Shown: positions 14,614 to 33,500, numbered from the stretch's first letter. The stretch is DNA of 64,000 nt from Paramoeba atlantica (GCA_977017575.1 CDRNVI010000019.1:1-64000); one strand, 5' to 3'. Notes: generated from the sequence alone by a model not told the origin. A program made the numbers and translations.

Positions 14614-14693
14614 TGACAAGAGAGGGGTTCGAACCCTCGCCCCGAAGGAGTAGTACCTGAAACTACCGTCTTAGACCACTCGACCATCTTGCC
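14614..14693 (-). tRNA. tRNA-Leu(CAG)
   Basis: GGCAAGATGGTCGAGTGGTCTAAG...GTAGT-TTCAGGT-ACTAC, variable arm CC-TTCG-GG, T-loop TTCGAAC. Confidence 0.93.
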
Positions 14694-14752
14694 TGCTACA
14701 GAAAAGCTAAGAGCTCTCCACAAGGTGTCAGAGTCAGCCATGAGCTGCAAAA

Positions 14753-14824
14753 TGCGCACGCCGGGAGTCGAACCCGGTCCGCGTGCTTGGAAGGCACGCA
14801 TCCTAACCGTTAGACTACGTGCGC
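14753..14824 (-). tRNA. tRNA-Gly(TCC)
   Basis: GCGCACG acceptor, anticodon arm CGTGC-CTTCCAA-GCACG, GGTTCGACTCC. Confidence 0.95.
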
Positions 14825-14897
14825 AACTGCACGAACGGAAACATGGTAAGCCTCTCTGAACCGTATAGGAAGGAGCTGCCTCAACTACAGGAGAAAA

Positions 14898-14969
14898 CTC
14901 CGCTGCCGGGGATCGAACCCGGATTTTCAGGGTGAAAGCCTGATGTTCTAACCATTATACTACAGCGGA
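14898..14969 (-). tRNA. tRNA-Glu(TTC)
   Basis: TCCGCTG acceptor, TCAGG-CTTTCAC-CCTGA, GGTTCGATCCC. Confidence 0.95.
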
Positions 14970-15023
14970 ACATAGCCGAACAAAAATTCGCCCAACACCA
15001 AGAAGCGAACGCAAGCTTAAATT

Positions 15024-15095
15024 TGATCGCGACAGGGATCGAACCTGCAACCGCCTGATCCGTAGTCAGACGCTCTACCATTGAGCCACGCGACC
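15024..15095 (-). tRNA. tRNA-Arg(ACG)
   Basis: GGTCGCG acceptor, TCTGA-CTACGGA-TCAGG, GGTTCGATCCC. Confidence 0.95.
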
Positions 15096-15168
15096 GCCCT
15101 GTGGAGCACAAACCCGTTTTGCGGGAATCATGCACAGATGTGCCACAGTGGCCTTGCCGGGTTTTGTT

Positions 15169-15242
15169 GCTCCTGTGGCCTAGTTGGTTATGGCATTGGT
15201 CTTATGAGCCGAGGATCGCGGGTTCGATCCCCGCCAGGAGCA
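15169..15242 (+). tRNA. tRNA-Ile(TAT), intronless
   Basis: GCTCCTG acceptor, TTGGT-CTTATGA-GCCGA, GGTTCGATCCC. The UAU anticodon is eukaryote-type. Confidence 0.92.
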
Positions 15243-15245
15243 TTT

Positions 15246-15331
15246 GCCGCGACGATCCTCGCTGGTGCGGGGGACAGGCTTCAAACCTGTAGGTGGGAAA
15301 TCCACAGCTGTTCGATTCGGCCCTCGCGGTG
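15246..15331 (+). tRNA. tRNA-Sec(TCA), eukaryotic 9/4 fold
   Basis: Anticodon arm ACAGG-CTTCAAA-CCTGT; 6-bp D stem CCTCGC-TGGT-GCGGGG; long variable arm GTGGG-AAA-TCCAC; 4-bp T stem GCTG-TTCGATT-CGGC; 9-bp acceptor with one mismatch; discriminator G; TTTTT immediately after. Confidence 0.93.
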
Positions 15332-18048: not shown

Positions 18049-19939
18049 GTGGAATTGACAGCTCCCCTGATGAAGCGGCACGTAAACGAACATGTAAAAG
18101 GGTTGCATACCATTTGTGAACCTTGTTCGTTCTTCCAAGAGCTCATGGGAAAACCCCCCGTTTTGAGCGCACAAAAGCACGACGAGCGTGTGAAATACAA
18201 GCGTGAAAAAGAGATTTTTAACGCGTGGAAAGGCCTTCAAATTGAAGGAAGCATTGTCAATGGCTTTACGTGCACGAAATGTGCCACAACACAGAGCGAT
18301 CAAAACCATGAACATCGTACTTTCAAGTATGATGACATGCGCAAACATGTTTTAGAACATGGGCGCGGGGATCATTCCCATTGCAAAGAGTGCTCCTTCT
18401 TCGAGGCGTTGCAAGGGAAACCCCCCATAAGACGTACTCGAGAGCATCTCTCGAGTGCGAATCACAAAACCGAGAAGGAGATGTACGACATGTGGATGGA
18501 CCTTGAGGTGCAAGGTACCATGTCTGCAGGCTTTCGGTGCACGAAATGTGCAGAATCACGGGGTAAAGTAAACCCTTCGTCCTACACGTTTATATATACA
18601 AAAATCACCCCATTTTTACCTAAAAATCGGCAATTTTTGACTCTAATCCTTCCGTTTTCTTCCGCGTCCCTGGCCAATTTTCTTGTTTTAGGCTCTTCGT
18701 TAAACGCGGTGGTTGTTTTCAACTTAGAAGTCACTCATGCTGCGCACTTCGCGTTGAAAACTACCACCGCGTTTAACAAAGAGCCTAAAACAGGAAATAT
18801 ACTGCGACTCCCCCCTTTAATAGAGACCCCCACTCAGACCGGTGGAAGTATAGGAATATTGCATAAGTATAGGAATATTGCATAAGTATAGAAATATTGC
18901 ACAAGCATAGGAATATTGCATAAGTATAGGAATATTGCACAAGCATAGGAATATTGCATAAGTATAGGAATATTGGGTGGAAGTCAAGGACTTTTGCATA
19001 AGTCAAGGACTTTTGTGGAACACCAAAGATTTTTTTTGATTTTCATTTTCCGTGCGTTCAGTATCCTACACTTCACTACATACGTTGACAACGCTCCCGC
19101 AGTTCACAATCCGTTTTCGTCTCTTCGTTTCTCGAAGGGCAGCTCGAATGAGGACAAGAAGGCTCCATCACGTCTGACTTATTCACAAGTGACAGCTGGT
19201 CATTCTCTCAAATGGTCCAAAAAACCCGCAAAGTCGAACTACGGGACTTCCACCACGTCCCGCTTGTCTCCCTTCCCCAAACGCGCAGGTGGGACTTCAC
19301 GCCTAGATGACGACCAAGTGGCCTCTAAGCCGAAAGCGCTGAAACCAGGGAAGTCCTTTGCAGAACGGTTTGGGGTACTGAAGCGGGAGCTCTTCAGACT
19401 CAGGAAGTCGCCAAGTACGGCGCTCTTCATAATACAATTGCAATCCACAAGTTACAGACTCAGAGTCTCAAGCTAGAATACAAGTGGATGTTACAAGCTC
19501 GGCGTCTGCAGGAACAACACATGCACCACATGTTAAACCTGCAGCAGCAGTGCCAAAATGCACTGCGGATTGTCGAGCGCGGTGGCCACATTTGTTCCAC
19601 ATGCCATCGCAAATTTATGGATCAGTCTTCCCTGGAGGAACATCAGCGGTCGCACTCCGCCGCTAGGGAGAAGCAAAATGCGAGATTTATTCAATCTCAG
19701 GCGCTGAAAAGAGAAAGCTTGTTTTTGTCATATATCAAAATGCGAGATCGCATAATAAATCAAGAGGAAGATTCCAGCCTCCACATCGCGTCGCGATTTC
19801 TTCCTCGCGTTACCCACCTCCACCTCGAACGTGCGCCGCCCCCTAAACGTGCTACCCCCAGTTCTAGGCCTTCCATTGACGAACCAGGTGGTTTCGGCGG
19901 CGAGTGGGATGAAGATGATATTTCTTCCCTTGATTCGGA
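18049..19939 (+). pseudogene. Zinc-finger (C2H2-like) coding sequence disrupted by repeat insertions (~18576-19094), a frameshift and the SL-headed retroelement
   Basis: Repeated CEPC/CKEC..H and CTKC..H..H motifs in ORF 18049; CSTCHRKFMDQSSLEEHQRSH in ORF 19488. The intervening DNA is module A, the palindrome and S2. Confidence 0.45.
18842..19015. repeat. 19-bp minisatellite S2, grading into the variant GCATAAGTCAAGGACTTTT
   Basis: About 7 units visible, plus variant units. Confidence 0.88.
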
Positions 19940-19977
19940 GACTCATGCTATAAAGATACAGTTTCTGTACCTTGTTG
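19940..19977 (+). other. Degenerate spliced-leader (mini-exon) copy
   Basis: GACTCATGCTATAAAGATACAGTTTCTGTACCTTGTTG compared with the kinetoplastid SL pattern AACTAACGCTAT....ACAGTTTCTGTACTTTATTG. It is not followed by the GT donor of an SL RNA gene. Confidence 0.78.
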
Positions 19978-20259
19978 ATTTTGCTAGCCCTTCCTTTCTT
20001 TTCCCGGAAACGGGCATACATTTTCCTTTTAAATGCCCGTTTCCGGCTGACGGCTAGCGGAAACTGTCCCTCTTTGTCGTGGAAGTAGGGGACGTACTTC
20101 CGACTTTTCACCCCTCCCCGGCTCACTCCTTGAGTGAGTTTTCTTCCCTCCCCGGCTTTCTTCTTCTCGCGCCTGTCTCTTCCCGGGAGCTATGCGCCAT
20201 GGTGGCCTCCCTTGAGGACCACCGGGCGTGACTCTGCCTTGCATTATCGCGAGGCAGCG

Positions 20260-20402
20260 GTCGGTTGCAGTGCGCCCCTCCGGCTGCGTAAAGAGATGGT
20301 GAGTTGCCTGGACCACCTCTACCGACTGGGACCGAGTCGGTTGCAGTACGCCCCTCCGGCTGCGTAAAGAGAGGGCGAGTTGCCTGGACCCCCTCTACCG
20401 AC
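20260..20402 (+). ncRNA. Tandem pair of 67-nt three-way-junction RNA structures in the retrotransposon 5' UTR (function unknown)
   Basis: Copies 20260-20326 and 20336-20402, each closed by GTCGGT/ACCGAC, with inner stems GCAG/CTGC and AGAG..GG/CC..CTCT. A T-A to G-C compensatory change distinguishes the copies. Confidence 0.5.
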
Positions 20403-20522
20403 AGAGTCCGTGTCGAACCCCCTTTGGCGACATCCGTTGTGGGCGGATTATGTGCCGATGATATCGGCCGTCGCAGTAAGGGGATTATCTCTGCGCCAAA
20501 GAGCGCATGATAAACAAACTAT

Positions 20523-23500
20523 GTGACCAAAGTGGCGTTGTTCCTGGAACCGGAGAAAACGTCCCACGTCCTGGTAACAGGGCTCAGCCCAAGCGCGTCA
20601 CTTGGATTGCTCCGAGATCATGTGGCAGCCACAATTCAACTCCCAAACGGCCTTATTCAAATCGTGGATCCCACCTCATATGAAGAGTTACCTCTCTCTG
20701 GGATTATCGGTCCCCCGACGACGGAATGCGTGTACGGGGCTACTATCAAGGCCCCACCAGGAGAAAAGTCAGGCAACGAAATCCCAATTTATTGTCAAAT
20801 TGAAGATCACCCAATCCGTATACCTGAGGGTGTAGCGCCGGTTGAGTACCCTGTTGCTATCTGCCACTTTCTAGGCATTGAACTTTCTTTGTCAAAATCC
20901 TGGGAACAGATTAAGGATGCGAGCGGGGTTTCATGGTGGTGCTTTAGGCCACCAGTTCTGTCATCAGAAACTGGCCGGTCCAAAGACCAAGTTCATACAT
21001 GGTTAATAAGAGGGGGTATTGAGAGCAACCCCGGCCCACGGGCAGTGTGGTGTTTCCGGTCAACTAAAAACGTCATCGCCAACTCTGGTTGGTCCAAAGC
21101 GCAAGTACGCACCCAGCTGATCCGAGGCTGCATTGAAAGCAACCCCGGACCGGGTAAGAAGAGGGGCCGACCCCCCGGAAGAAAGTTCACACCTTCAAGT
21201 TCGTTGGATCTCGGGTCACTTCAGATCCAAGCAGACTCGACGATAGAGGAAAACCCAGGCCCGGAGCGCCCACGCGGCCGGCCCAAGGGAAGCAAAACAA
21301 GAGTTAAAGATGTGTTGAATCTGGAAGAAATTCACCCTGGAAGCCCTTGCATATCTGGGGCCTCAGAAGCAGTCCCACGTGGGACCATACTGGAGAAGAT
21401 GGCTGGAGGAATATTCGAAGATTGTTCAACCAAAGAGGTTCAATCGGGATCGCATATCTCACAGAAACTGTGTAATACGACAAATCTTCCGCCTCGTCAA
21501 CTCCACGAAATACAAAGCCTGCGGGAAACATACACAAAACTGATTACGCGACCTAGTCTGCGTAAATTATATCACCTGCAATTACCGTGCTGGAAGGAAT
21601 TATGCGGTGGAATATGCAGAGACTTTGAAATACAACACACAGACACAAAAGCAAAGATGTCGTGGAACCTATTATGCGCAGTGAAGCAGTTCTTATTCCT
21701 GCCCGAAAGTCAACTGACTCATCGGCAACTGGCGTATGAACTACGAAAGCGGATGGCCGAGCAAGAACCAAAATTTACCCCTTCGCTTGCAACCAAAAGT
21801 GTGGCAAAGTTTAACCCGGTAGGCCGAGCAGAGGCACTGCTTAAACTTGGTGCGATCGGGAAAGCGGCAAAAGCGCTAGAGGCGAAGGAACGACAACCAC
21901 TATCTACTGAAGAGATCGCTAAGGCCATAGATCGACTTCACCCAAAGGCCTTTCGGGGTTATAAACATTTGCCGGCAAAATCTATGGACATCGAAAAGCA
22001 AACCTTAACTGACAGGGCTAGAAAGCTCGCCAAAGGATCCGCGCCGGGCCCATCAGGCTGGACACGCGAACTTCTTATACCGCTCCTAGAGGACCAGGAT
22101 ATCGTGGCCTGCGTTACTTGGATAGCTACAGCAGTGCTGCGAAACTCCCGAGACGCTCAGCTAAGGGACGTCTTAACCAGCTCCACTCTGATCTTGCTGC
22201 GCAAGGAGGGCCCTTCCGTAGAAGGATCCCCAGCCTGCCGACCTATAGCAATGGGGGAAATCTTTCTTAAATTGGCTAGCCAAATCGCCATGGACAGGGT
22301 AGCAGAAGCAACGGGCAGACTTTTCCAAGATACACAATTTGGTGTTGGAACAAGAAACGGAGGACCTAAAATAATATTAAGGGCAAGAAACGCGTTTCGT
22401 CAAAAAGCGGACTTTGTGCTCTTGACAGTAGACATCCGTAACGCCTTCAATTCAATTGAAAAAAGCGCGGTGTTTCAGTATCTAAGGGGAAATGATGAAT
22501 TTCACGAGCTATACGGGGTGACCTCATATGTATATGGGGCTCCAACTACGATATTTAACTCGTCGTGTTCGCCGACTAAGGTTCTGAGGGGAGTCCGACA
22601 AGGCGACCCATTAGGACCGTTACTGTTTTCTCTCGGCTTGCACCAAATTCTTGGAAAATTGAAGGATGAGTTCAGTGATCTGACGCTTTGGGCTTACCTA
22701 GACGACCTTTCAATCATCGGCCCGGCAGAACGTGCCGCACAGGCGTTTGGCGCTCTCTGTGATCACGCTTCGGGAATAGGACTGGAGGTACATCCGGCCA
22801 AATGTAAGCTTTCGACGCATTTCAATGACCAGTACGCTCCTTTCAGAGGTATGAACATAGAGCATGCGGAGCAAGGACAAAAGCTCCTAGGTGCATTCGT
22901 CTCCAAGGAAGGCGCGGATGAAACCAGATGGGTAGTCAACCAAATGCCTAAATTGCAGACATTCCTGGATCGGCTGCAACATCTCTCGTTACAAAGTGCT
23001 TACATTTTGCTGAAGAGATGTGGAGTCCCCCGGTGGGACTACCTAATGCGGTGTCATGAGCCGGAGGTAACGGCAAAAGCCAACGTGTTAGCGGACAAGG
23101 CCATACAGGAGTGTGCCTCAGAGCTGCTAGGAGGCTTCGAAGACCTGGAAAAGAACCCGTTTCACAGTACTCTCATGACGGGCGACCTTTTGGGGGCGAA
23201 ACCTTTTGCGCAGCAAGCGGCAACTCTGTATTCTCGCACAAAAGCTGAGGTATTAGGGTGTATGGAAAGACGACGTTCTGCCTTGACAAGATATGAAGAG
23301 TCGAAGTCAGCAGTGCGTAAAGAAACCAGCGAACTACATGACGCCCATTCACTTCAGTTGATGGACAAGAGAACGCGCAATTGGACAGAGGCGCATAGGA
23401 ATCGGGGTGAGTACTTCATGCGCAACGCAGAATGGCAAACAGCCATGCGCATGCGATACTTGATAGCACCTACTTCGGACCCTTTCGCACAACGTGAGTG

Positions 23501-24053
23501 CGGAGACATCCTCTCAAACAAAGATTTTGTTGTGCACGCCCTTGACTGCAATAAAGTCAAAGGCGACACTGCGGCCACTCGCCACAAACTTGTTAAGAAT
23601 GCCTTCGTGCACTTGCTACGACAGTACGGATTCACTCCTGACAATCATGAACCCCGATTCTCTGCTGGTCAGGGCCCCGACGTCTGCTTTATGCTGGGAG
23701 GGAAGATATGTCTGGTGGACTTGACCGTCGTTAACCCCCTCGCCCCTTCTTATGTTAAGGCCGAATGGGTAGCGCCTGGCAACACTCTAGAAAGGGTGGA
23801 AAGCTTGAAAGTAAAAGCGCACAGTGACATGGCCACGAAAAGGGGTATGCATTTCTACCCCCTTCCATTTACCGTTTTTGGTGTGGCAGGGAAGCGCACC
23901 GTACTCCTCCTAAAGGAGATCGCAAGGTATACGTATGACAGGAAAGGTTTCCTGCGTCATGCACTACAAGCCATTAATGTGGCTGTTCAAAAAGGCAACG
24001 CCGCGATACTATCCTCCGCGGTAAAAGAGTGGAGGAAGGCGGGTGTCCGCTAA
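20523..24053 (+). CDS. Retrotransposon polyprotein: N-terminal domain, three 2A-like motifs, AT-hooks, reverse transcriptase, REL endonuclease
   Basis: RT motifs APGPSGW, CRPIAMGE, QFGVG, VDIRNAFNSI, GVRQGDPLGPLLF, AYLDD. C-terminal C..HALDC, RHKLV, PD...LVDLTVVNP and KVKAH (REL). No APE domain. Confidence 0.92.
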   Translation: MTKVALFLEPEKTSHVLVTGLSPSASLGLLRDHVAATIQLPNGLIQIVDPTSYEELPLSGIIGPPTTECVYGATIKAPPGEKSGNEIPIYCQIEDHPIRIPEGVAPVEYPVAICHFLGIELSLSKSWEQIKDASGVSWWCFRPPVLSSETGRSKDQVHTWLIRGGIESNPGPRAVWCFRSTKNVIANSGWSKAQVRTQLIRGCIESNPGPGKKRGRPPGRKFTPSSSLDLGSLQIQADSTIEENPGPERPRGRPKGSKTRVKDVLNLEEIHPGSPCISGASEAVPRGTILEKMAGGIFEDCSTKEVQSGSHISQKLCNTTNLPPRQLHEIQSLRETYTKLITRPSLRKLYHLQLPCWKELCGGICRDFEIQHTDTKAKMSWNLLCAVKQFLFLPESQLTHRQLAYELRKRMAEQEPKFTPSLATKSVAKFNPVGRAEALLKLGAIGKAAKALEAKERQPLSTEEIAKAIDRLHPKAFRGYKHLPAKSMDIEKQTLTDRARKLAKGSAPGPSGWTRELLIPLLEDQDIVACVTWIATAVLRNSRDAQLRDVLTSSTLILLRKEGPSVEGSPACRPIAMGEIFLKLASQIAMDRVAEATGRLFQDTQFGVGTRNGGPKIILRARNAFRQKADFVLLTVDIRNAFNSIEKSAVFQYLRGNDEFHELYGVTSYVYGAPTTIFNSSCSPTKVLRGVRQGDPLGPLLFSLGLHQILGKLKDEFSDLTLWAYLDDLSIIGPAERAAQAFGALCDHASGIGLEVHPAKCKLSTHFNDQYAPFRGMNIEHAEQGQKLLGAFVSKEGADETRWVVNQMPKLQTFLDRLQHLSLQSAYILLKRCGVPRWDYLMRCHEPEVTAKANVLADKAIQECASELLGGFEDLEKNPFHSTLMTGDLLGAKPFAQQAATLYSRTKAEVLGCMERRRSALTRYEESKSAVRKETSELHDAHSLQLMDKRTRNWTEAHRNRGEYFMRNAEWQTAMRMRYLIAPTSDPFAQRECGDILSNKDFVVHALDCNKVKGDTAATRHKLVKNAFVHLLRQYGFTPDNHEPRFSAGQGPDVCFMLGGKICLVDLTVVNPLAPSYVKAEWVAPGNTLERVESLKVKAHSDMATKRGMHFYPLPFTVFGVAGKRTVLLLKEIARYTYDRKGFLRHALQAINVAVQKGNAAILSSAVKEWRKAGVR

Positions 24054-24871
24054 TTGAAAATGCGAAATGACTTTACAAAATCGTTTTGGTTGTTTTTCGT
24101 TAATGATTATTCTTTCCTTCAAAATGAGGAAAAACGGATAAAAAGACTCAAAATTCCACGGGGGGGGGAAGATATCTTGAAACCACCGTACTTTTGTTCC
24201 TCACCACGTTTTCGCATTAACACAACTGTTGACATAACTTTCTTGCCCCCTGTAAGCAAAGGCTTCTGAAACTGAGGCGCCGCGAAGCGACGCCGATTTT
24301 TTTTTCGTGTTTCGAATTTTCATTTCATCCCCCCCTGCTTTAATAGATACAAATTTAATAGATACCAATGATGAAATTGCCACCCTTTAATAGATTGCCC
24401 CCATTTATGAAATTGCCCCCCTTTAATAGATACAAATGACGAAATTGTGTCTACATTAAAGGGGGGGTCACAGTACCATTACGTGTGGTCCATAGGAGGA
24501 GCCCGCGTGGGGCACTGTCAGAGAGGCCCAAATGTAGTCGGCCGCATCAAGGTCCGCATCAAAGCCCCCGTTTGCGAGCAAGGCCTAATTGTGAGCGTAG
24601 CCCTGGGACAGAATTATAATTTTTGGCGACCCGTGCGCTTCCTCGCATGGGACTCGCGTCGACGACTTCGCATGGGAAGCTGTAAGGATCTTCGAAACTA
24701 CGGAATTGTAGGGCTGTGGATGAAAATGAAATTTTCGAAAATCTCTTATAGAATGCTCACACTTTTCCAGACTAATGGAGCCATATTTTCTATAAAAAAT
24801 GCCATTTTTTCGATTTCGAACGTTTTTTGAAAAGTTGAAATTACCGAAAAAACCTACGGCACTATTCTTTC

Positions 24872-32141: not shown

Positions 32142-33500
32142 TCAAAGTGCAGGTTGCACCTTCGTAGCGTGTGGCTCCTCATTTTGGCTTACATCAAGAA
32201 AAAAGTCTTGCGCTGATACATCGACCACAATTACATTGGAGAAACCAGAAGCTGCTTCTTTTTGAACATCTATGACCTCATGCTGGTGTGCTTTCATTCC
32301 ATATACTTTCCTTGCAATGGTATAATCCTCGTCGCTCGAATACAGCTCAGCAAGAGTCTGATTGCAAATCAATGTGCTACCAGTAGTGAGAGATTCATCA
32401 GAATTTAAACTTGAGTCTACAGGTCGAACGCAACCCACAATCCAACCACGAATGCGATCAAGCTCTTCCAATTCCTTTAAGAAAGAGGTGGCTATCGAGA
32501 TATTTGCAAGAGCAATTAAGAGACCACCGGATGTTTCCACACTGCGACCCTCCAAAAGGACGTTACTTTGTTTTGTTGTTCCAGCTATGCACGGGAGAGT
32601 ATGTATTTGTAGACGTAATGAACTTCTTTGCGCTTCGGCAAGATTTGTAGCGTGTCCGAGTATACCATACCCTGTTATATCTGTAGCCCCATGTGCCCTA
32701 TATTTGTGCATAAGACGAGCAGCCGTACGGTTATGATGCAACATAGAACGAACAGCTAGCTGATAATCTTCAATGATTTCATTTGCTTCCGCTAGGCTGG
32801 AAACTTCGTTCCTGTCTCGAGCAACGTTATACCGATGTACGGCAGGTTGCGTTCCTAACGGCTTCGTCAGAACCAGTACATCCCCAACTTCGAGTCCGCT
32901 GGGTGGAATAAAGTCATCCTCGTGCACTACGGCGGTTGCGACTCCCCCAATTATGGGCCAGGGGTTCAGTATTGTTTGACCGCCTGAGACCTGACAATCA
33001 GCTTGACGCATTCCGTCCGCAAAGCCTTGCATCATAAGACGTGTAACAGTATTTCGTATGTCACCACATATTTCTGTACAACTACCTACTAACATTAATG
33101 TGGTATCAGCACGATCTATTCCAAGGCTGTATACATCAGATAAGACGTTAGCAGCTCCAATAAGACCTTGCGTATAAGGATCGTCAACGAGAGGAAAGAA
33201 GAAGTCTGTGGTTGACACAATGTACAGAGTATGACCATGGATCTTGCTCAGTGGTTTAATCGAACAGTCGATATTGTCAGAATTAGTAACACAATGAATT
33301 CCTGAACTTTCTAAAAGATTTTTAAGAACACAGCGGGGTACTTTGCAACCTCAGCCTCGCAAGGATGAGTATTTCGTAAGACGAAAATCAAGGGGCAAAT
33401 CACTTGTCTTCGTAGATGTCGAGTTCGCCTCAGCAATGCAGTTGAAGTTGATAGCTTTTTGCGAAATAGAGGCAGAGCTTCTATTTTCCACCTTATTCAT
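32142..33500 (-). CDS. SEPHS2: Selenophosphate synthetase 2, selenocysteine-containing (UGA at 33351-33353), 452 aa
   Basis: The track ORF (TTDFFFP, ANVLSDVY, GGQT..NPW, DITGYGILGH, ETSGGLL) extends upstream in frame to ATG 33500 through FRLTKYSSLRG-TGA-GCKVP, the SelD active-site G(U/C)GCK motif. Confidence 0.92.

Follow-up and report, generated by a model that had tools for sequence, protein, structure and literature searches.

In non-LTR retrotransposons, Odon et al. (2013, PMC3708506) found 2A peptides in six clades only (Rex1, Crack, L2, L2A, CR1, Ingi), each of them of the APE type, and placed the origin of the retrotransposon 2A at a node inside the APE-type group. The same study lists the CRE/SLACS-like lineage among the most ancient non-LTR retrotransposons. 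The 2A peptide of L1Tc works on trypanosomatid ribosomes with values of up to 95.8%, with the downstream product being lowered (PMC5814959). For Trypanosoma and Perkinsela, a survey published in 2025 reported 2A peptides of class A but not the context in which they occur, and two preprints from 2026 broaden the range of reverse transcriptase (RT)-associated 2A peptides, neither of which separates elements with a restriction-enzyme-like (REL) endonuclease from those of the APE type. An earlier note on the DNA analysed here had stated that 2A motifs are not known from the CRE/SLACS-like REL group, and this agrees with our literature search, in which no paper was found that describes 2A in REL-type or CRE-clade elements, SLACS or CZAR.

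Layout of the locus

The window, i.e. the whole stretch of 64,000 nucleotides that was analysed, contains an open reading frame (ORF) at 20523-24053 (+), whose translation carries three in-frame NPGP motifs (GIESNPGP, CIESNPGP and TIEENPGP) between 21015 and 21263, as the earlier note had described. Motifs 1 and 2 form a duplicated unit, WCFR...G.SK.QV...LIRG.IESNPGP, and the peptides between the predicted break sites are 38 and 37 amino acids long, close to the roughly 37 amino acids claimed before. The element comprises the following features:

19093-19948 (+): 5' part of the element with leader, start of the long ORF and acidic linker; homology to other copies begins at 19093
about 19587-19655 (+): C2H2 zinc finger, zf-met/JAZ-like (Pfam E 1e-3 to 3e-3, below the cut-offs)
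19949-20518 (no strand given): foreign 570-bp high-copy repeat within the ORF, not element sequence; missing from the copies L002 and L003
20519-24061 (+): 3' part of the element with the remaining ORF up to its stop codon (24051-24053), followed by about 8 nt of tail, TTGAAAAT; no poly(A)
20523-20951 (+): two tandem ubiquitin-like (beta-grasp) domains (AlphaFold2 and Foldseek on the L002 equivalent)
20937-21038 (+): 2A unit 1, which reads WCFRPPVLSSETGRSKDQVHTWLIRGGIESNPGP; core GIESNPG/P, predicted G/P break between 21035 and 21036
21039-21152 (+): 2A unit 2, which reads RAVWCFRSTKNVIANSGWSKAQVRTQLIRGCIESNPGP; core CIESNPG/P, predicted G/P break between 21149 and 21150
21153-21185 (+): AT-hook 1, GKKRGRPPGRK, directly 3' of motif 2; kept after the 2A in the subfamilies L046 and L049
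21231-21263 (+): motif 3, ADSTIEENPGP; core TIEENPG/P, predicted G/P break between 21260 and 21261
21264-21296 (+): AT-hook 2, ERPRGRPKGSK, directly 3' of motif 3
22233-22826 (+): reverse transcriptase domain (Pfam RVT_1, E 4.7e-17, residues 571-768)
23493-24050 (+): CCHC knuckle and PD-(D/E)xK endonuclease (C993, H1005, C1009, R1020-H1021, D1053, D1066, K1096)

The candidate AT-hooks that had been proposed to follow motifs 2 and 3 have the RGRP core, the diagnostic part of this motif, with basic flanks (KRGRPPGRK and PRGRPKGSK); the Pfam AT_hook model scores 13.8 bits against both hooks, under its cut-off of 17.4. Scores below the cut-off are usual for a motif so short.

The cores of units 1 and 2 match the expanded pattern (D/G/C/N)(V/I)ExNPG/P of Li et al. 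2026 exactly, and TIEENPGP of motif 3 is the rarer variant with T at position p12. In RNA viruses, G at p12 is as common as D, and activities in native context were over 95% for p12 = C and 88.5% for p12 = T in vitro (Li et al. 2026, PMC12846837). It had been proposed that the replacement of Asp by G, C or T reflects tuned, partial skipping; however, all three are natural p12 variants that were active in vitro (PMC12846837), and their presence therefore does not indicate skipping that is weak by design. StopGo activity also depends on the upstream context, for which six viral motif classes have been described (Li et al. 2026, PMC12846837). The context GWS...L.RG of the family described here corresponds to none of these six classes, which is an observation against StopGo, as is the lack of even the family context at motif 3. 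Activity is least assured for motif 3, because the conserved upstream context of the family, GW...L.RG, is missing there.

State of the window copy and of the family

The reading frame at 19093-19948 is continuous with the rest of the ORF up to the 570-bp insertion. Contigs assembled from public runs join position 19948 to 20519 and represent the majority form without the repeat, and the word depth over 19949-20518 exceeds that of the element by a factor of roughly 30-170. As the insertion cuts the ORF and other copies continue upstream, the GTG at 20523 does not represent a true start. Compared to the family majority form, as given by the public-run contigs, the window copy has private changes in two of its domains. 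In unit 1, CGG instead of TGG at position 20976 turns the invariant GW into GR, and one Glu codon of the majority form is missing after 20953; in the CCHC knuckle, CGT instead of TGT at 23493 replaces the first Cys by Arg (amino acid 991). The window copy is thus interrupted and dead, and makes no StopGo products. The longest open copy, L002, encodes 1249 amino acids, with its zinc-finger part being separated from the remainder by a frameshift; its unit 2 reads NPGR, which, like the GR for GW in unit 1 of the window copy, speaks against StopGo. 2A and RT are in frame within the long frames of L002, of L046 and of a 1465-amino acid frame at C12.

Copies of the family are 94-99% identical to each other, and many of them are 5'-truncated at varied points. 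They share one 3' end, consisting of the stop codon and about 8 nt without poly(A), and have no LTRs. The word depth at the 3' end of the element is about five times that at its 5' end. In these respects, the copies resemble a non-LTR family of young age. Many loci are paired with identical flanks and are probably haplotigs, so that the number of independent insertions is about half of the locus count. About ten independent copies have different flanks, which have only their AT-richness in common; judged by these flanks, the family has no specificity for the spliced-leader gene. No target-site duplication could be defined at the window copy.

Class of the element

A Pfam scan of the ORF with E-values up to 0.1 found RVT_1 alone and no APE domain; the zinc finger, the two ubiquitin-like (di-Ubl) domains, the 2A units and the AT-hooks explain the N-terminal region. 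Among solved structures, the best sequence matches of the RT are R2 proteins (1.5e-10), followed by LINE-1 ORF2p. The C-terminal 246 residues can be aligned with 34 relatives, among them a named SLACS reverse transcriptase. This alignment has invariant columns of C, H, C, H, D and G and nearly invariant ones of C, R, D, K and N, and together they read as a CCHC knuckle followed by RH...PD...D...K. The AlphaFold2 model of the CCHC-endonuclease domain has a pLDDT of 93.7, and its best match in a Foldseek search is R2Tg (9dou_A; E 2e-6, TM 0.67), followed by R2Bm (8gh6) and archaeal Hjc resolvases. Judged by this model, the C-terminal domain is a restriction-enzyme-like endonuclease. The element is a non-LTR retrotransposon with a REL endonuclease and without an APE domain; the earlier note had come to the same assignment, which is borne out by the Pfam scan, the CCHC/RH/PD/D/K columns and the R2 fold matches.

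Conservation of the 2A unit

A back-translated (V/I/M)ExNPGP pattern has 85 matches in the 45.7-Mb genome and none when the pattern is reversed; several of the 2A-bearing families in this genome are known from such pattern matches only. The matches represent at least 25 distinct nucleotide versions, with IEANPGP being written in 11 synonymous ways, and this variety of synonymous codons marks the peptide as being under selection. Seven diverged families in the genome are only 24-34% identical in their N-terminal regions. The positions that are invariant in all seven, W, W..P, L, GW, L.RG and N.GP, lie nearly all inside the 2A unit, and the last 30 columns of the alignment, which correspond to this unit, are 63% identical on average compared to 28% elsewhere.

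The comparison of families also gives hints on how the motifs were assembled. In the closest subfamilies of the same genome, L046 and L049, a single unit is followed by AT-hook 1; unit 2 with hook 1 is thus the common arrangement, and unit 1 is a family-specific duplicate. The counterpart of motif 3 in L046 and L049 does not go beyond a weak "DPNPIE". In the fragments L055 and L058, IEENPGP and hook 2 are preceded by a regular context, GWTKHTLQVELIRAG, and the DNA homology of both fragments to the window begins precisely with the Ile codon, at position 21243, which places a module junction inside a 2A unit.

Relatives in other organisms and the RT tree

In public collections, 242 relatives were found, in which the 2A core of eight residues was observed 19 times, compared to 0.015 expected from shuffled sequences, with 2 of the 19 cores (P0003 and P0110) coming from the genome under study; NPGP alone was observed 21 times, compared to 2.2 expected. 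P0003 and P0110 are identical to the loci L046 and L049 of this genome; they were therefore rejected as foreign relatives and dropped as independent evidence. The cores of the public relatives are located N-terminal to the RT, mostly in contexts that are rich in L and similar to viral ones, for example LLRGGVEPNPGP, LLIAGIEPNPGP or RSGDIEQNPGP. Seven of the public relatives were scanned and have no APE domain, and many share the C-terminal endonuclease domain. The best identity to anything in the genome under study is at most 36% for P0098 and at most 33% for P0183; both come from other organisms.

In a maximum likelihood tree of 83 RT domains, which was calculated with a quick search method and rooted by midpoint only, all 23 of the 23 2A-bearing rows fall into one clade of 47 that includes SLACS (SH-aLRT 96), and none of the 36 rows outside this clade is 2A-bearing, although some "2A-less" rows may be cut at the N-terminus, as was the case for one row of the own genome that had been mislabelled in this way. 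This places the element with SLACS, in line with the CRE/SLACS-like assignment made previously, with SLACS being the sole named reference in a tree that contains no NeSL, R4, HERO or R2 sequences. A search of SLACS and CZAR reverse transcriptases for 2A was negative, with NPG being found in 0 of 17 named Trypanosoma SLACS/CZAR-like RT proteins.

The ORFs located between 24.8 and 63.7 kb of the window lie almost all on one strand, and one of them matches the Pfam model "Kinetoplastid PH-like domain". The host looks kinetoplastid-like.

One might read the motifs as relics without activity or as matches that arose by chance while a repeat decayed, given that a 570-bp insertion, a W-to-R change in unit 1 and a Cys-to-Arg change in the CCHC knuckle have left the window copy dead and that motif 3 has no conserved context. 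However, a chance origin was rejected on the counts given above, both in the genome (85 versus 0) and in the public relatives (19 versus 0.015), with the core also being enriched in foreign ones, and the core has been kept through many synonymous changes and across families that are only 24-34% identical. The relic reading as a whole is very unlikely, and for units 1 and 2 it is already contradicted.

Protein modules on both sides of the 2A

The earlier note had assumed an N-terminal domain upstream of the 2A. Such a domain is present; however, it is larger than thought and consists of a zinc finger and two ubiquitin-like domains. In other copies and families, the ORF opens with a C2H2 zinc finger, whose best Pfam models are zf-met and zf-C2H2_jaz, both below cut-off, followed by an acidic stretch and the folded di-Ubl module. 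The AlphaFold2 model of the L002 equivalent has a pLDDT of 84-95 over residues 28-170, and the best Foldseek matches of the Ubl module are linear di-ubiquitin and ISG15 (E 4e-5, probability 1.0). The last strand of the di-Ubl fold includes the WCF of the 2A unit. The 2A proper, i.e. the approximately 30 residues after WCF, is a low-confidence linker with a pLDDT below 50 and a short helix; the GW...L.RG context, which is invariant across families, is modelled as a helix at residues 182-191. Sequence searches with the N-terminal protein returned paralogues of the same genome only, a feature search of the ESM Atlas gave nothing above noise (0.75), and kinship with the SLACS ORF1 could be demonstrated neither by sequence nor by feature search.

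This arrangement raises the question whether the conserved unit has another role and NPGP is incidental, in that the unit might be a protease-processed ubiquitin-like tail (L-I-R-G-G) or a peptide of the di-Ubl module for protein interaction. The unit follows two ubiquitin-like domains, its L.RGG is similar to the LRGG tail of ubiquitin and ISG15, and the conserved residues W166 and P170 lie in or just past the last strand of the fold. However, a sister family has RRGC instead of GG, the invariant part contains E-x-N-P-G-P, which is exactly the StopGo core, and foreign relatives that lack this N-terminal context keep the core in L-rich contexts of the viral type. We therefore consider such a role very unlikely and StopGo the better reading of the unit.

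In the families compared, the protein downstream of the 2A always begins with a basic or DNA-binding segment. This segment consists of AT-hooks in the window family and its two closest subfamilies, and of the basic stretch RRAKRKNK followed by a tandem repeat array in a sister family that is 41% identical; in another family of the genome, tandem VEWNPGP and VEQNPGP motifs are immediately followed by CZAR-like zinc fingers. The architecture is thus an ORF1-like protein, one to three 2A motifs, a DNA-binding N-terminus, the RT and the endonuclease.

Predicted translation of intact copies

With the zinc finger and the di-Ubl module located upstream of the 2A, StopGo would part an ORF1-like protein from an AT-hook-RT-endonuclease, and from the arrangement and conservation of the motifs it is probable that this happens in intact copies. 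The motifs, their conservation, the folds of the domains and the class of the element are documented above, whereas skipping as such, the ratio of the products and their roles are what we infer in the following scenario. A single ORF would encode the zinc finger, the acidic stretch and the two ubiquitin-like domains, then one to three 2A motifs, and finally the basic N-terminus, the RT and the CCHC-endonuclease. The nascent ...L.RG(G/C)IExNPG would induce release of the chain from the ribosome behind Gly, with translation continuing from Pro, so that one message could give rise to separate ORF1-like and RT-endonuclease proteins. Serial sites may lead to near-complete separation; they could also reduce how much enzyme is made in relation to the upstream protein, and the ratio would probably be skewed towards the latter. 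The element was not found in any public run recorded as RNA. The earlier interpretation stands with regard to the StopGo core, the REL type, the grouping with SLACS and the novelty of the host clade, whereas the tuned partial skipping does not, and the interpretation was incomplete concerning the dead state of the window copy and the nature of the upstream protein.

Alternatively, the motifs could mainly act as translational attenuators, at which the ribosome stalls and drops off, thereby lowering the output of RT-endonuclease with little resumed product. Reduced protein abundance was found for 59-70% of the retrotransposon 2A-like peptides tested (10.64898/2026.06.17.732966), which also speaks against clean skipping, and the 2A of L1Tc is strongly imbalanced to the disadvantage of the downstream product (PMC5814959); tandem sites would compound such an effect. 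However, the RT-endonuclease can arise only by read-through or resumption past the sites, and the many copies that are 94-99% identical suggest recent activity, for which enough downstream protein must have been made. Moreover, the core matches variants that skip efficiently in vitro (PMC12846837). Attenuation as the main function is therefore unlikely, though less so than the two readings discussed above, and the separation of two proteins by StopGo remains the preferred reading.

It is possible, although less likely than not, that StopGo is old and widespread in the CRE/SLACS-like REL lineage, occurring in several eukaryotic groups, where it would produce an ORF1-like protein and an RT-endonuclease from one ORF. 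If so, the retrotransposon 2A was not first gained within the APE-type clades, and the serial sites and the junctions inside 2A units would mark the 2A as a point of recombination and assembly for new architectures. If the sites work, the question of the 2A origin moves to one early gain followed by losses or to repeated gains, and single-ORF REL elements would have a route to an ORF1-like partner protein. Working sites would also provide a natural set of p12 = G/C/T variants, a new upstream signature and tandem arrangements, and could be candidate tools for co-expression in kinetoplastids.

Comparison with known systems

Serial StopGo sites that release short peptides, as predicted here, are found in viral multi-2A polyproteins, such as those of picornaviruses (PMC11512398) or the tandem H15A/B (10.64898/2026.09.24.754024), and p12 = G/C/T variants occur naturally in viruses (PMC12846837). 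In contrast to these systems, the carrier described here is a cellular retrotransposon, and its context GWS...L.RG lies outside the described viral classes. The R2 protein (9dou, 8gh6) is the best structural match of the CCHC knuckle and endonuclease and the best sequence match of the RT among solved structures; however, the sequence identity is only 14-20%, the N-terminal modules differ and no 2A is mentioned in the R2 papers searched.

SLACS falls into the same clade as the element in our RT tree and has the CCHC, RH, PD, D and K columns of the endonuclease alignment in common with it. Further likenesses to SLACS and CZAR are the kinetoplastid-like host and the CZAR-like zinc fingers that follow the 2A in another family of the genome. 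SLACS and CZAR presumably have separate ORF1 and ORF2, and the 17 named Trypanosoma RT proteins are without NPG, whereas the window family has one ORF with 2A. Furthermore, SLACS and CZAR use a single insertion site in the spliced-leader gene (PMC5814959), whereas the window family is found in varied AT-rich sites.

The APE-type 2A elements (L1Tc/ingi, Rex1, CR1, L2, L2A and Crack; PMC3708506) differ from the element described here, in which a REL endonuclease is located at the C-terminus and an APE domain is missing. Here, the 2A follows a folded zinc-finger/di-Ubl protein of several hundred residues, whereas theirs is located near the N-terminus, and up to three serial sites are present, with G, C or T at p12 instead of D. 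Like the APE-type elements, however, the element has an in-frame ExNPGP N-terminal to the enzyme part within a single ORF, and, like L1Tc/ingi, it belongs to a host group in which StopGo on the ribosome is established.

The neighbourhood and the 3' end of the element

The REL-type retrotransposon lies in the following neighbourhood of the window:

14614-15330, cluster of six tRNA genes, tRNA-Sec included
18049-18990, 278-aa ORF with recurring Cys/His motifs
19949-20518, 570-bp insertion in the element, a very high-copy repeat
32142-33218, ORF with the AIR-synthase-related domains AIRS and AIRS_C

Short GCATAGGAATATTGCATAAGTATAGGAATATT-like tandem repeats come after the 278-aa ORF, immediately upstream of the element. 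The AIRS/AIRS_C ORF, which shares both domains with selenophosphate synthetase, is found around 17 kb from the tRNA-Sec cluster. The 570-bp insertion is GC-rich, contains internal direct repeats and has a word depth approximately 30-170 times that of the retrotransposon; copies of this repeat also adjoin the elements at loci L008, L009 and L026 (5' side).

The element terminates a few bases past its stop codon (window 24051-24070, TAATTGAAAAT), with ragged variants among the 3' ends of the copies, and a poly(A) tail is absent from the 3' ends of both the window copy and other copies. Its 3'-end recognition signals must therefore be located in the coding region.

A junction inside a 2A unit, and repeat arrays in 2A-bearing elements

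Two 417-bp fragments elsewhere in the genome share 94.7% identity with window 21243-21659:

C30:123106-126125, fragment L055
C56:65629-68648, fragment L058

In both, homology begins exactly at the first base of the Ile codon in IEENPGP; the sequence ahead of this point is a regular 2A context, unlike that of the window. The boundary is thus a recombination or template-switch junction inside a 2A unit. At G000:C54:730573-752343, five VEQNPGP sites spaced 5437-5438 bp apart belong to an array in which copies of the 2A-bearing element of the zinc-finger type are joined head to tail. The sister family (L020-L024, e.g., C12:830304-835907) carries tandem repeats of around 48 residues (...GGAMPDASEDCAEAGSLRAGPYPKSHCNGGP...) between 2A and RT, whose copy number is variable and which in some copies contain frame shifts within the array.

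Similarity to ubiquitin tails

In the window copy, L-I-R-G-G (21009-21023) directly precedes the StopGo core and follows two ubiquitin-like domains. The L.RGG of the 2A unit is reminiscent of the LRGG in which ubiquitin and ISG15 end, a likeness that may be coincidental, because the sister family has RRGC at this position (alignment A2).
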